This document shows, one piece after another, positions 8,967-12,228 of a DNA stretch of 64,000 nt. The notes beneath the pieces were generated by a model. It saw nothing but the letters and a program-made list of their open reading frames with translations, was not told where the DNA came from and searched no databases. The stretch covers positions 10,044,001-10,108,000 of the forward strand of contig CP075493.1 of the NCBI GenBank assembly GCA_021613535.1, in the 5' to 3' direction. Positions within the stretch are counted from its first letter, which is position 1; each line of letters begins with the position of its first letter. Both the position numbers and the translations under genes were made by a program. This stretch comes from Adineta vaga. Taxonomy: Eukaryota; Animalia; Rotifera.

Positions 8967-10465
8967 ATGAGTAACAATATACAAACTTCCACGACATCCG
9001 TTTCTGGTCTAGATATACGCTTAATTCGGTATGGTTCAATATTTCTTCTTGTTGTTGGAACATTTGGAAATATTGTTTCATTTATCATTTTTTCCTATGG
9101 AACATTACGAAAATCATCAACATTTCGTTATCTTGCATTACTTTCTCTAATGGATTTACTTGTTCTCTATTCAGGTCTATTGGATTTATTTCTAATGATT
9201 GAATATGGTGGAACATTTTCATTGAGAAGTCTTAGTCCTGTTTCGTGTCGTCTACATACATTTATTACTTATTGGTCTCAACATTCATCATCATGGATTC
9301 TATCATTCATATCTGTTGATCGAGCTGTAGCAACAAATTGTATAAAATTTGCGAAGAAATTTTGTACACCTCGTTCAGCTGAATATATCGTCGGTATTAT
9401 CTTATTATTAACAGCTCTATTGAATTGTCATGAATTAATCTTCCTTCGTTTACAAAATACGACATCGACATTAGAACAAACAAGTTTACCAACAACGATT
9501 GTCACACAAGAATCAATGATGATCTATGAATCAGATATGAATACGAATCAGTCAGTACGAAAACGATCTATTCAATCGATAGATTTCCTATGTGATAATT
9601 CTTCATGGAATATTCTATGTTTGACAAGAAAAAAACGTGATCTATCAACTTTTAATTTAACAACTTCTACAATTCCATTTAAAACCAAAATAAATGATAG
9701 AAAATGTGAACCTTTTGAAGGTAGTCGATATGAATTCTTTTGGGATCATGTAAGTGTTGTATTTTGATTTTATCGAGAAGAAAAGAAGAAATTAATCAAA
9801 TCTATTTATTTTTAGGTATGGGAATGGATTGATGTGTGTCTTTATGCATTAATTCCATTTACTGTTATGAGTATTGGAACATTCTTAATAGTTTACCGAG
9901 TTTACTATCAACAAAGACGTGTTTTTCGGTCACGTCGTTCAGGAGCAAATAATCCTATGGGTACAACACCGAATAAAGCCAAAAGTTTATTTTATCTTTT
10001 ATTTACATTAAATTTACTTTATTTTATTCTCGTCAGTCCAGTTGTTTTTGTTACGACAATACTATTTCGTGATCCAAATGCTGAATTAGCTTATCCACGT
10101 TTTAAAGCGACAATTTATCTCATGCAATATTGTAATCATTCACTAAATTTTATTTTCTATGGTTCGTTTGAAAAACAATTCATTGTCTTCATTTTGATTG
10201 CTTTTGATTTTTGTTTTGCTTTCGTCTAGGAATCACTTCACCACCATATCGACGAACATTATGTGAATGGTTTCAAGTTTTATTTCCACATTTGCCACAA
10301 TGTTGTCAACGAACAATTCGAGAACGATCGAAATCAATTCGATTCGAAAATATTAATTTAAAACAAGTGAATATAAAACAAACAAAAACCACTCGATTAG
10401 GTAATAAGCATTCACCAAATCCACCACTTATACAGAAAGAATCGGTTTCATTAATACCAAGATAG
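8967..10465 (+). CDS. Class A (rhodopsin-family) peptide-receptor-like GPCR (exons 8967-9749, 9816-10161, 10230-10465)
   Basis: Seven hydrophobic segments with GN in TM1, LSLMD in TM2, Cys at the start of TM3, SVDRA (DRY variant), LIPF in TM5, SP in TM6 and NHSLNFIFY in TM7. GT-AG introns keep the frame. A probable 5'UTR intron ends at ttctag just before the ATG. Confidence 0.92.
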
Positions 10466-10540: not shown

Positions 10541-10570
10541 AGAAAGAAAGAAAGAAAGAAAGAAGAAGAA
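10541..10570. repeat. (AAAG)n/(AAG)n microsatellite
   Basis: agaaagaaagaaagaaagaaagaagaagaa. Confidence 0.8.
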
Positions 10571-11513: not shown

Positions 11514-12228
11514 TCAATGTCGCCATTGTTTTGCTTTGTCAGTTAATGGTACATAACGAACGCCAAGAGTAGCACGTTCAGATACTTCTCGTCCATCTAT
11601 CGATCTTTCATAAATCATCATTGTTTGACTTCCAACACCGACGGGAACGACTAAACGTCCACCAGGTTTTAATTGATCGATTAATGTAGACGGTCGAGTA
11701 GGTGCTGCTGCACCAACATGAATTGCATCGTATGGACCACCTTGTTGATAACCTAGACGACCATCTCCTAAGACAATTTCTAGAGTCTCATTCTCGAACA
11801 ATGAACGACCATTTTTCGAAATATTTTTTATTGACAATTCAACCAATTCAGGTATATGTTCAATACCAATTACTTTTCCACCGGGTTGAACGAGACGAGC
11901 TATACAAGCAGTTAGATATCCTGATCCTGATCCAACATCAAGTACACGAGCTCCCAGTACTAGTTTATCTCCAAGCATTTCAAGTGCATGTGCATGCATA
12001 TGTGGAGCAGAAATCGTGACATTGTAACCAACTAGAAAAATCAAAAATATTATGATGAATATCTTCTCTAGACACAAGCATTTTTACTCGGTTGTGGTGC
12101 ATCTTCTACAATCGATCTGTTGAAAAATCTAATCTATCTGTTGCTAACATAGCAGATTTAATTCGTTCATTTTTAATGATATGTTGTTGAACAAGTGATT
12201 GAATGAGATCAGCATGTGTTCGATGCAT
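11514..12228 (-). pseudogene. PCMT1: Protein-L-isoaspartate O-methyltransferase (PCMT/PIMT) with a 1-nt frameshift in exon 1 (pseudogene or assembly error)
   Basis: Exon 2 contains GYNVTISAPHMHA, VLDVGSGSGY, GPYDAIHVGAA, QLKPGGRLVVPVG and VRYVPLT. Exon 1 reads MHRTHADLIQSL...AMLATDRLDFSTDRL and then TAG (12108-12106), while the expected EDAPQP(I) lies in another frame. Confidence 0.75.

Follow-up and report, generated by a model that had tools for sequence, protein, structure and literature searches.

A class-A G protein-coupled receptor (GPCR) gene of the rotifer Adineta vaga encodes, in extracellular loop 2 (ECL2) of its product, a conserved cassette in which two basic sites flank a cysteine loop. 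The gene has three exons and occupies positions 8967-10465 on the forward strand of the window, the 64,000-nucleotide stretch C1:10044001-10108000 (about 30% GC) of a 100.8-Mb assembly of six contigs. The best explanation of the findings as a whole, to which we assign a probability of roughly 0.55, is that a convertase cuts the receptor within this loop into two disulfide-linked chains.

A sequence-only reading of the same DNA had described the cassette as V-R-K-R, 20 residues with C-x8-C, and R-K-K-R, followed by the cysteine of R-K-C-E-P. Translation confirms this order, with window positions 9555-9641 encoding V-R-K-R, the 20 residues with C-x8-C, R-K-K-R, and D. Its end at 9638 is right, whereas the codons of V-R-K-R start at 9555 and not at 9558, and the start assigned to the whole feature, 9460, falls off the codon boundary (frame 8967+3n). 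The loop, put at about 100 residues, spans about 94 (residues 160-253) in an AlphaFold2 (AF2) model. Both sites had been called furin sites; the downstream one carries the full R-x-K-R motif, but the upstream one is a plain dibasic K-R with V at P4, the fourth residue before the presumed cut.

The ECL2 cassette and its conservation

ECL2 and the cassette comprise the following features, together with the cysteine at the top of transmembrane helix 3 (TM3):

9444-9725 (+): ECL2, approximately residues 160-253, about 94 amino acids (AF2 model)
9456-9554 (+): N-flank of the insert, residues 164-196, variable and rich in Ser/Thr/Asn, with N-x-T/S sequons at N164 and N194
9555-9566 (+): upstream basic site V-R-K-R, residues 197-200
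9567-9626 (+): segment between the basic sites, 20 residues, Ser201-Thr220, aligned across 35 orthologs
9591-9620 (+): cysteine loop C-D-N-S-S-W-N-I-L-C, Cys209-Cys218, C-x8-C
9627-9641 (+): downstream site R-K-K-R, residues 221-224, then Asp225; a full R-x-K/R-R convertase motif
9654-9662 (+): conserved N-glycosylation sequon N230-L-T232, shortly after the downstream site
9705-9707 (+): Cys247, the canonical ECL2 cysteine in R-K-C-E-P, downstream of both basic sites
9246-9248 (+): Cys94, top of TM3, the presumed partner of Cys247 in the canonical TM3-ECL2 disulfide; this pairing is general to class-A GPCRs

The base of ECL2 forms a β-hairpin in the AF2 model (strands 160-164 and 245-249), and the cassette as a whole is a conserved 29-residue unit at the tip of this hairpin. 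The insert between the strands is modeled with low confidence, its predicted local distance difference test score (pLDDT) being below 50 at residues 169-212 and 223-235, and is probably flexible. Its N-flank has a column entropy of mostly 2-3 bits and the highest proportion of nonsynonymous differences (pN) of all partitions. The term "mucin-like", which had been applied to this stalk, is only moderately apt: Ser and Thr account for 38% of approximately residues 164-197 in the window gene and for 18-52% in orthologs. As a separate observation, the cysteine loop of A. vaga holds an N-x-S sequon, Asn211-Ser-Ser (9597-9605), within C-D-N-S-S-W. This sequon is not conserved, most orthologs having N-P-Q or K-T-P at that place.

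When the loop was shuffled 200,000 times with its composition preserved, 3.4% of the shuffles contained R-x-[KR]-R and 5.8% C-x8-C, and the full cassette arose twice (0.001%). Not this figure but conservation across species is the decisive argument for the cassette. Word searches yielded 85 relatives, and 79 family sequences cover ECL2. Orthologs of the receptor were found in bdelloid rotifers only. The named species with the cassette are three Adineta (A. vaga with both homoeologs, A. ricciae, and A. steineri) and five Rotaria (sp. Silwood1, sp. Silwood2, R. sordida, R. socialis, and R. magnacalcarata); about 45 metagenome fragments carry it as well. Didymodactylos carnosus is also among the named relatives retrieved. 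The C-x8-C loop is present in 66 of the 79 sequences. Within a few residues after its second cysteine, 65 of these 66 display [KR]-x-[KR]-R, with R at P4 in 62, and 58 have an upstream [KR]-R 8-11 residues before the first cysteine. The residue following the downstream motif, P1′, is D in 60 sequences, E in 4, and Q in 1, while P3 of this site accommodates 12 different residues (entropy 2.75 bits) and ranks among the most variable positions.

An alignment of 59 sequences resolves this pattern by residue. K199 (80%) and R200 (90%) are conserved in the upstream site, C209 (93%), D210 (81%), W214 (83%), and C218 (90%) in the cysteine loop, and R221 (88%), K223 (93%), R224 (97%), and D225 (88%) in the downstream site, which is the best-conserved element of the loop. 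The sequon N230-x-T232 follows at 86% and 83%, and Cys247 is invariant (59/59). Together with S207, which is Phe in the window gene, and two Thr in the N-flank, these are the ECL2 positions conserved at ≥80%. Cys94 in TM3 is conserved at ≥90%. Both loop cysteines are invariant in the 35 cassette-carrying sequences of alignment A3, the family consensus of the loop reads C-D-N-x-x-W-N-F-L-C, and D-[LIV]-S is conserved after the downstream site. The Arg codons of the sites vary synonymously between species (CGT/CGA/CGC/CGG/AGA/AGG).

The closest paralog in the genome lies on C4 (L002; P0081, 498 amino acids), taken as the homoeologous chromosome. Its ECL2 is 30 residues longer and largely different, and its cassette consists of R-H-K-R, an 11-residue spacer, C-D-N-P-S-W-S-F-L-C, one residue, R-E-K-R, and D. 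From K-R to the loop, the spacer measures 8 residues in the C1 clade and 11 in the C4 clade, and 1-2 residues separate the loop from R-x-K-R. The check proposed with the sequence-only reading, namely whether sites and cysteines persist in orthologs and homoeologs while the rest of the loop diverges, thus turns out in its favor in both homoeologs, the three Adineta, and the five Rotaria, which supports a selected cassette.

Sequence partitions of the gene were compared by pN only; dS is saturated or noisy in partitions of 20-30 codons. Cassette pN is below that of the N-flank in 15 of 15 species pairs and below that of the C-flank in 14 of 15, and it exceeds that of TM1-4. A tree calculated without the ECL2 columns splits into a clade with C1-type loops and a clade with C4-type loops. 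Because each clade holds both Adineta and Rotaria, the cassette is older than the homoeolog split and the Adineta/Rotaria split.

The exceptions are informative about the ranking of the elements. In D. carnosus the segment lacks cysteines, but K-E-K-R and R-T-K-R, separated by 34 residues, occupy the aligned positions. One metagenomic lineage displays stepwise decay, in which the Trp is lost (P0028), then the second half is deleted (P0024), and finally everything between the basic sites is gone (P0036, P0037, and P0045), the leftover site drifting to K-K-H. P0050, outside the tree, has the same between-sites deletion with K-K-Q as the leftover site. Since the single remaining site decays once the peptide is deleted, this pattern suggests that the basic sites and the peptide are functionally coupled. 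P0041 represents an independent partial loss of the cassette. Further, the upstream dibasic pair has disappeared in R. sordida (C1 type), R. magnacalcarata (C4 type), P0007, P0009, P0016, and some others, all of which keep the cysteine loop and the downstream site. Based on D. carnosus, the decay lineage, and these upstream losses, we rank the downstream R-x-K-R as the core element, followed by the cysteine loop, whose retention is strong without being absolute, and by the upstream site as the most dispensable element.

The cassette is specific to this pair of genes within the A. vaga genome, as searches with a single sequence and with a 35-sequence profile located it in the C1 and C4 genes only. 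The same genome yielded no free-standing peptide precursor with the module, the remaining matches being short with E >1. The two nearest A. vaga paralogs (C5 and C2) have no introns, and their ECL2 is an ordinary one of about 30 residues. Neither a [KR]-x-[KR]-R motif nor an extra cysteine pair occurs in ECL2 of the 16 closest non-orthologous relatives inspected, whose loops, rich in N-x-S/T sequons, are between about 15 and more than 100 residues long. Additionally, 142 further cluster representatives, taken from an exhaustive representative search, were scanned for the motif, and none had a cysteine loop and then R-x-K-R in ECL2. The sole regular-expression match among the 142, at residue 241 of 390 in P0215, was taken as an intracellular-loop site from its position alone. 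A search of the ESM Atlas for look-alikes of the cassette returned no usable match.

One observation concerns the species sample. In TM1-4, the proportion of synonymous differences (pS) between A. steineri (L025) and Rotaria sp. Silwood2 (L027) is only 0.12, compared with 0.43 between A. steineri and A. vaga. A. steineri nevertheless groups with the other Adineta in the protein tree. Possible reasons for the low value are shared codon bias, contamination or mislabeling, or transfer between bdelloids.

Predicted processing of the receptor and rival explanations

According to the processing model, a furin/kexin-type proprotein convertase would cut after R-x-K-R during the receptor's passage through the late secretory pathway, with a second cut after the upstream K-R in most species. 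The product would be a two-chain receptor composed of TM1-4 and TM5-7, held together by the Cys94-Cys247 disulfide straddling the cut and by helix packing. As Cys94 lies upstream and Cys247 downstream of both sites, the half-receptors would stay covalently linked. Cleavage at both sites would excise a cyclic peptide of 20-24 residues, comparable to the C-peptide of proinsulin, whereas cleavage at the downstream site only would leave an N-chain whose C-terminus, once trimmed, is the loop. The Cys209-Cys218 loop itself is probably closed by a disulfide. We put the cut at the downstream site at slightly better than even odds. A free cyclic peptide could plausibly be released where both sites are present, but this is less secure than the two-chain cut, given the repeated losses of the upstream site. 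Of the two outcomes envisaged in the sequence-only reading, the two-chain receptor generated by a convertase thus draws support from conservation, while the released cyclic ligand is not a requirement in all lineages: cysteines are absent between the two sites of D. carnosus, the peptide was deleted in one lineage, and other sequences have lost the upstream site.

Several lines of evidence are in agreement with this two-chain model. Fixed residues at P4, P2, and P1 with a free P3 constitute the recognition pattern of furin/kexin, and the downstream site agrees with the furin motif R-X-[RK]-R listed in an earlier table (PMC7598153). The genome encodes convertases, as judged from at least nine exon-level matches above cut-off to the convertase P domain PF01483 (P_proprotein) on C1, C2, C3, C4, and C6. 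Moreover, the AF2 model places both basic sites on the extracellular/luminal side, in the stretch from TM4 to TM5 and in regions with pLDDT <50, in keeping with an accessible, flexible substrate. It is established that convertase cleavage at consecutive basic residues, with carboxypeptidase trimming, gives rise to disulfide-linked multi-chain proteins (PMC9296861).

Other observations weigh against cleavage. A disulfide-bonded cysteine 1-2 residues before P4 could hinder docking of the convertase, and furin has no need of the near-invariant Asp at P1′, which may be due to a different constraint. The upstream site is missing in about 8 of the 66 loop-bearing sequences, so that excision by two cuts is not universal. 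At least two lineages have lost the cassette and kept the receptor open reading frame (ORF), and the cassette is therefore dispensable for folding. Further, AF2 gives the cassette no confident placement.

The conserved residues could alternatively form an uncleaved structural or ligand-binding element, in which the loop with its central Trp and the basic residues acts as a lid or docking surface for an external ligand, glycan, or partner, and the basic residues are kept for binding and not for proteolysis. Such a role would be in line with peptide GPCRs, where ECL2 often shapes ligand entry, and the nearest folds of the rotifer receptor are those of somatostatin, opioid, bradykinin, and neurotensin receptors. 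Moreover, C, D, W, and C of the loop core are conserved like the basic sites, and the P1′ Asp is conserved beyond the needs of a convertase. We still regard this explanation as rather unlikely, because the strict R-x-[KR]-R spacing, the free P3, and the acidic residues at P3 and P1′ fit a protease better than electrostatics, D. carnosus retains the two sites without the loop, and none of the 16 nearest relatives inspected has basic clusters in ECL2. A simple basic patch or a glycosaminoglycan-binding site is disfavored as well, since the C4-clade motif R-[DE]-K-R-D is nearly without net charge (about +1). The cassette might also act as a tethered agonist or inverse agonist, the cysteine loop or the new Asp-Leu-Ser N-terminus folding into the orthosteric pocket and the cut serving as the switch of a self-regulated receptor. 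This idea overlaps with the cleavage model and does not exclude it, and a role as a lid would likewise be compatible with cleavage. Built-in ECL2 agonists are known for GPR52 and GPR21 (PMC9839698; PMC10085714), the flexible flanks of 35-50 residues are long enough to reach the pocket, and both the D-[LIV]-S past the cut site and the Trp-centered loop are conserved. However, AF2 leaves the cassette undocked from the bundle (pLDDT <50), and cassette-less lineages keep an intact receptor ORF; a tethered ligand accordingly appears unlikely to us.

More doubtful still is a receptor that doubles as a prohormone, from which the excised cyclic peptide of 20-24 residues would be secreted as an autocrine or paracrine signal. 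The order of a dibasic site, a conserved peptide, and R-x-K-R corresponds to that of neuropeptide precursors, and the flanks of the peptide are less conserved than the peptide itself. Its trimmed form would end 1-2 residues past the second cysteine, recalling the C-terminal rings of urotensin/somatostatin-type peptides. Yet the upstream site was lost repeatedly while the loop was kept, the D. carnosus segment has no cysteines between its sites, the genome has no free-standing precursor with the module, and one peptide per receptor molecule makes for poor hormone stoichiometry. We attach the same low probability to the extended form of this idea, in which the GPCR is its own prohormone, with the excised peptide or the new chain ends as its agonist or inhibitor, and has been maintained as two copies since the ancient bdelloid genome doubling; if it held true, the gene would encode a self-contained ligand-receptor unit. 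Finally, the segment might be an artefact, that is, an unrecognized in-frame intron or a mis-annotation absent from the mature protein. This we consider very improbable. The segment is open in all eight genomic loci examined, its length differs between them in whole codons, and it is conserved at the amino-acid level over synonymous change. The known introns of the gene measure only 66-68 nucleotides, and the NCBI model includes the segment. An intron from GT at 9448 to AG at 9700 was rejected, as its 253 nucleotides are not a multiple of three and amount to about four times the length of the real introns, and as the residues it covers are conserved. Additionally, the ortholog P0018 is found on two intronless 1.5-kb JGI contigs from different samples (L035 and L036), both with the cassette. 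The 3′ ends of these contigs coincide within 1 nucleotide, about 40 nucleotides past an AATAAA, and the contigs are probably derived from metatranscriptome mRNA, intron loss in P0018 being the alternative.

Comparison with known processed receptors and precursors

To our knowledge, proteolytic maturation of GPCRs has been described for N-terminal ectodomains only, as in protease-activated receptors (PARs), adhesion GPCRs, the TSH receptor (TSHR), and GPR37. Targeted full-text literature searches retrieved no GPCR with convertase processing inside ECL2; the matches concerned N-terminal cleavage (GPR37 and NTSR1) or generic motif tables. A convertase-cleaved ECL2 would place the rotifer receptor among known kinds, namely convertase-made two-chain receptors and GPCRs with a built-in peptide element, the new aspect being the position of the cassette in ECL2. 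If the two-chain model is true, a functional class-A receptor is made as two disulfide-linked half-bundles via a convertase cassette in ECL2, which would be a novel means of tying a receptor's maturation to a built-in peptide.

The subunits of TSHR stay disulfide-linked. TSHR resembles the model proposed here in that it is a GPCR cut twice in a receptor-specific extracellular segment, with removal of the intervening piece: intramolecular cleavage in its hinge leads to the loss of a "C-peptide" of about 50 residues and to A and B subunits (PMC8609095). However, this cleavage takes place in the hinge of the N-terminal leucine-rich repeat ectodomain and leaves the serpentine part whole, whereas a cut between TM4 and TM5 would split the bundle. 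The piece that would be excised from the rotifer receptor, moreover, is the conserved part, and there is no homology between the two systems. Proinsulin and the complement proteins C3, C4, and C5 share with the model basic sites, convertases, carboxypeptidase trimming, and cut-straddling disulfides (PMC9296861), and in proinsulin two sites also flank an excised connecting peptide. These proteins are soluble and secreted, while the cassette is part of a loop of a polytopic receptor. The comparison with prohormones is similarly divided: a conserved peptide between basic sites and divergent spacers are present, yet the cassette resides inside a seven-TM protein and not in a secreted precursor that has a signal peptide and lacks a membrane anchor.

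PAR1-4 are likewise class-A GPCRs that are irreversibly modified by a protease, and their new terminus can act as a tethered ligand contacting ECL2. In contrast to the arrangement considered here, they are cut at a site in the N-terminal exodomain by a thrombin/trypsin-type cleavage at the cell surface, have no R-x-K-R cassette, and retain an unsplit bundle. The N-terminus of the rotifer receptor comprises only about 16 residues without a basic site, its motif being located in ECL2. Adhesion GPCRs are two-fragment receptors with a tethered agonist as well, but form by autoproteolysis through the N-terminal GAIN domain at the GPCR proteolysis site (GPS), with an extra furin site in some ectodomains; in the rotifer protein, Pfam detects 7tm_1 only and no GAIN domain, and the N-terminus is short. 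GPR52 and GPR21, both orphan receptors of class A, have an ECL2 that itself fills the orthosteric pocket and determines activity (PMC9839698). Their ECL2 is short, uncleaved, and without basic sites or an extra cysteine loop, and they have no sequence relation to the rotifer receptor. The latter has 7tm_1 and the TM3-ECL2 cysteine pair of class A together with the convertase motif, and the genome contributes the enzyme genes.

Gene model, receptor identity and neighboring features

The gene model consists of the following parts:

8967-9749 (+): exon 1, Met1-His261, with the N-terminus, TM1-TM4, and the whole of ECL2 (ORF with GT donor; Pfam 7tm_1)
9750-9815 (+): intron 1, 66 nucleotides, GTAAGT...TTTTAG, phase 0 (junction WDH|VWEW also in P0001 and full-length orthologs)
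9816-10161 (+): exon 2, TM5, third intracellular loop, TM6, and TM7 to N-F-I-F-Y-G (AF2 helices 254-301, 314-344, and 354-379)
10162-10229 (+): intron 2, 68 nucleotides, phase 1 (junction FYG|ITSPPYRR also in P0001)
10230-10465 (+): exon 3, helix 8 and the C-terminal tail, stop codon at 10463-10465

The conceptual product is identical to P0001, a database entry of 454 amino acids named "hypothetical protein I4U23_003224 [Adineta vaga]", on which the full-length analyses were performed. Intron 1 is gone from the genomic contigs of several C4-type metagenome orthologs (P0021, P0031, P0033, P0040, and P0043), which have a continuous W-D-H-V-W-E-W and still read through intron 2.

P0001 matches Pfam 7tm_1 (PF00001) with 40.2 bits at a cut-off of 30.5. 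When the exons are searched one by one, exon 1 scores above the cut-off and exon 2 is a weak match to the C-terminal half of 7tm_1. The AF2 model (m25dbdd32c1b6, calculated from a 64-sequence alignment) is a confident bundle of seven TM helices and helix 8 with a predicted template modeling score (pTM) of 0.72. Foldseek identifies the peptide receptors SSTR1/2 and the opioid, bradykinin, and neurotensin receptors as nearest folds (E ~1e-9 for SSTR1 and opioid receptors) at about 14% identity. The best sequence matches in the PDB are opioid receptors, GPR34, and the psychosine receptor, with E only ~1e-5. At the position of D/E-R-Y at the end of TM3, the family has a conserved variant form, D-R-A (residues 118-120), and the equivalent of N-P-x-x-Y in TM7 is N-F-I-F-Y, without Pro. 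With weak PDB sequence matches and solved folds only about 14% identical, we classify the receptor as a divergent orphan of a lineage-specific, peptide-receptor-like class-A family. Its paralogs are numerous in the genome: of 875 candidates listed at a first look, at least 146 were scored matches.

Downstream of the gene, a short (GAAA)n/(GAA)n microsatellite is located in the 3′ flank at 10541-10568, about 80 nucleotides past the stop codon of the GPCR. Further along, an ORF of 187 amino acids on the reverse strand (11514-12077) contains the motif V-L-D-V-G-S-G-S-G-Y-L-T and is, as we presume from inspection by eye, related in appearance to protein-L-isoaspartate O-methyltransferase.

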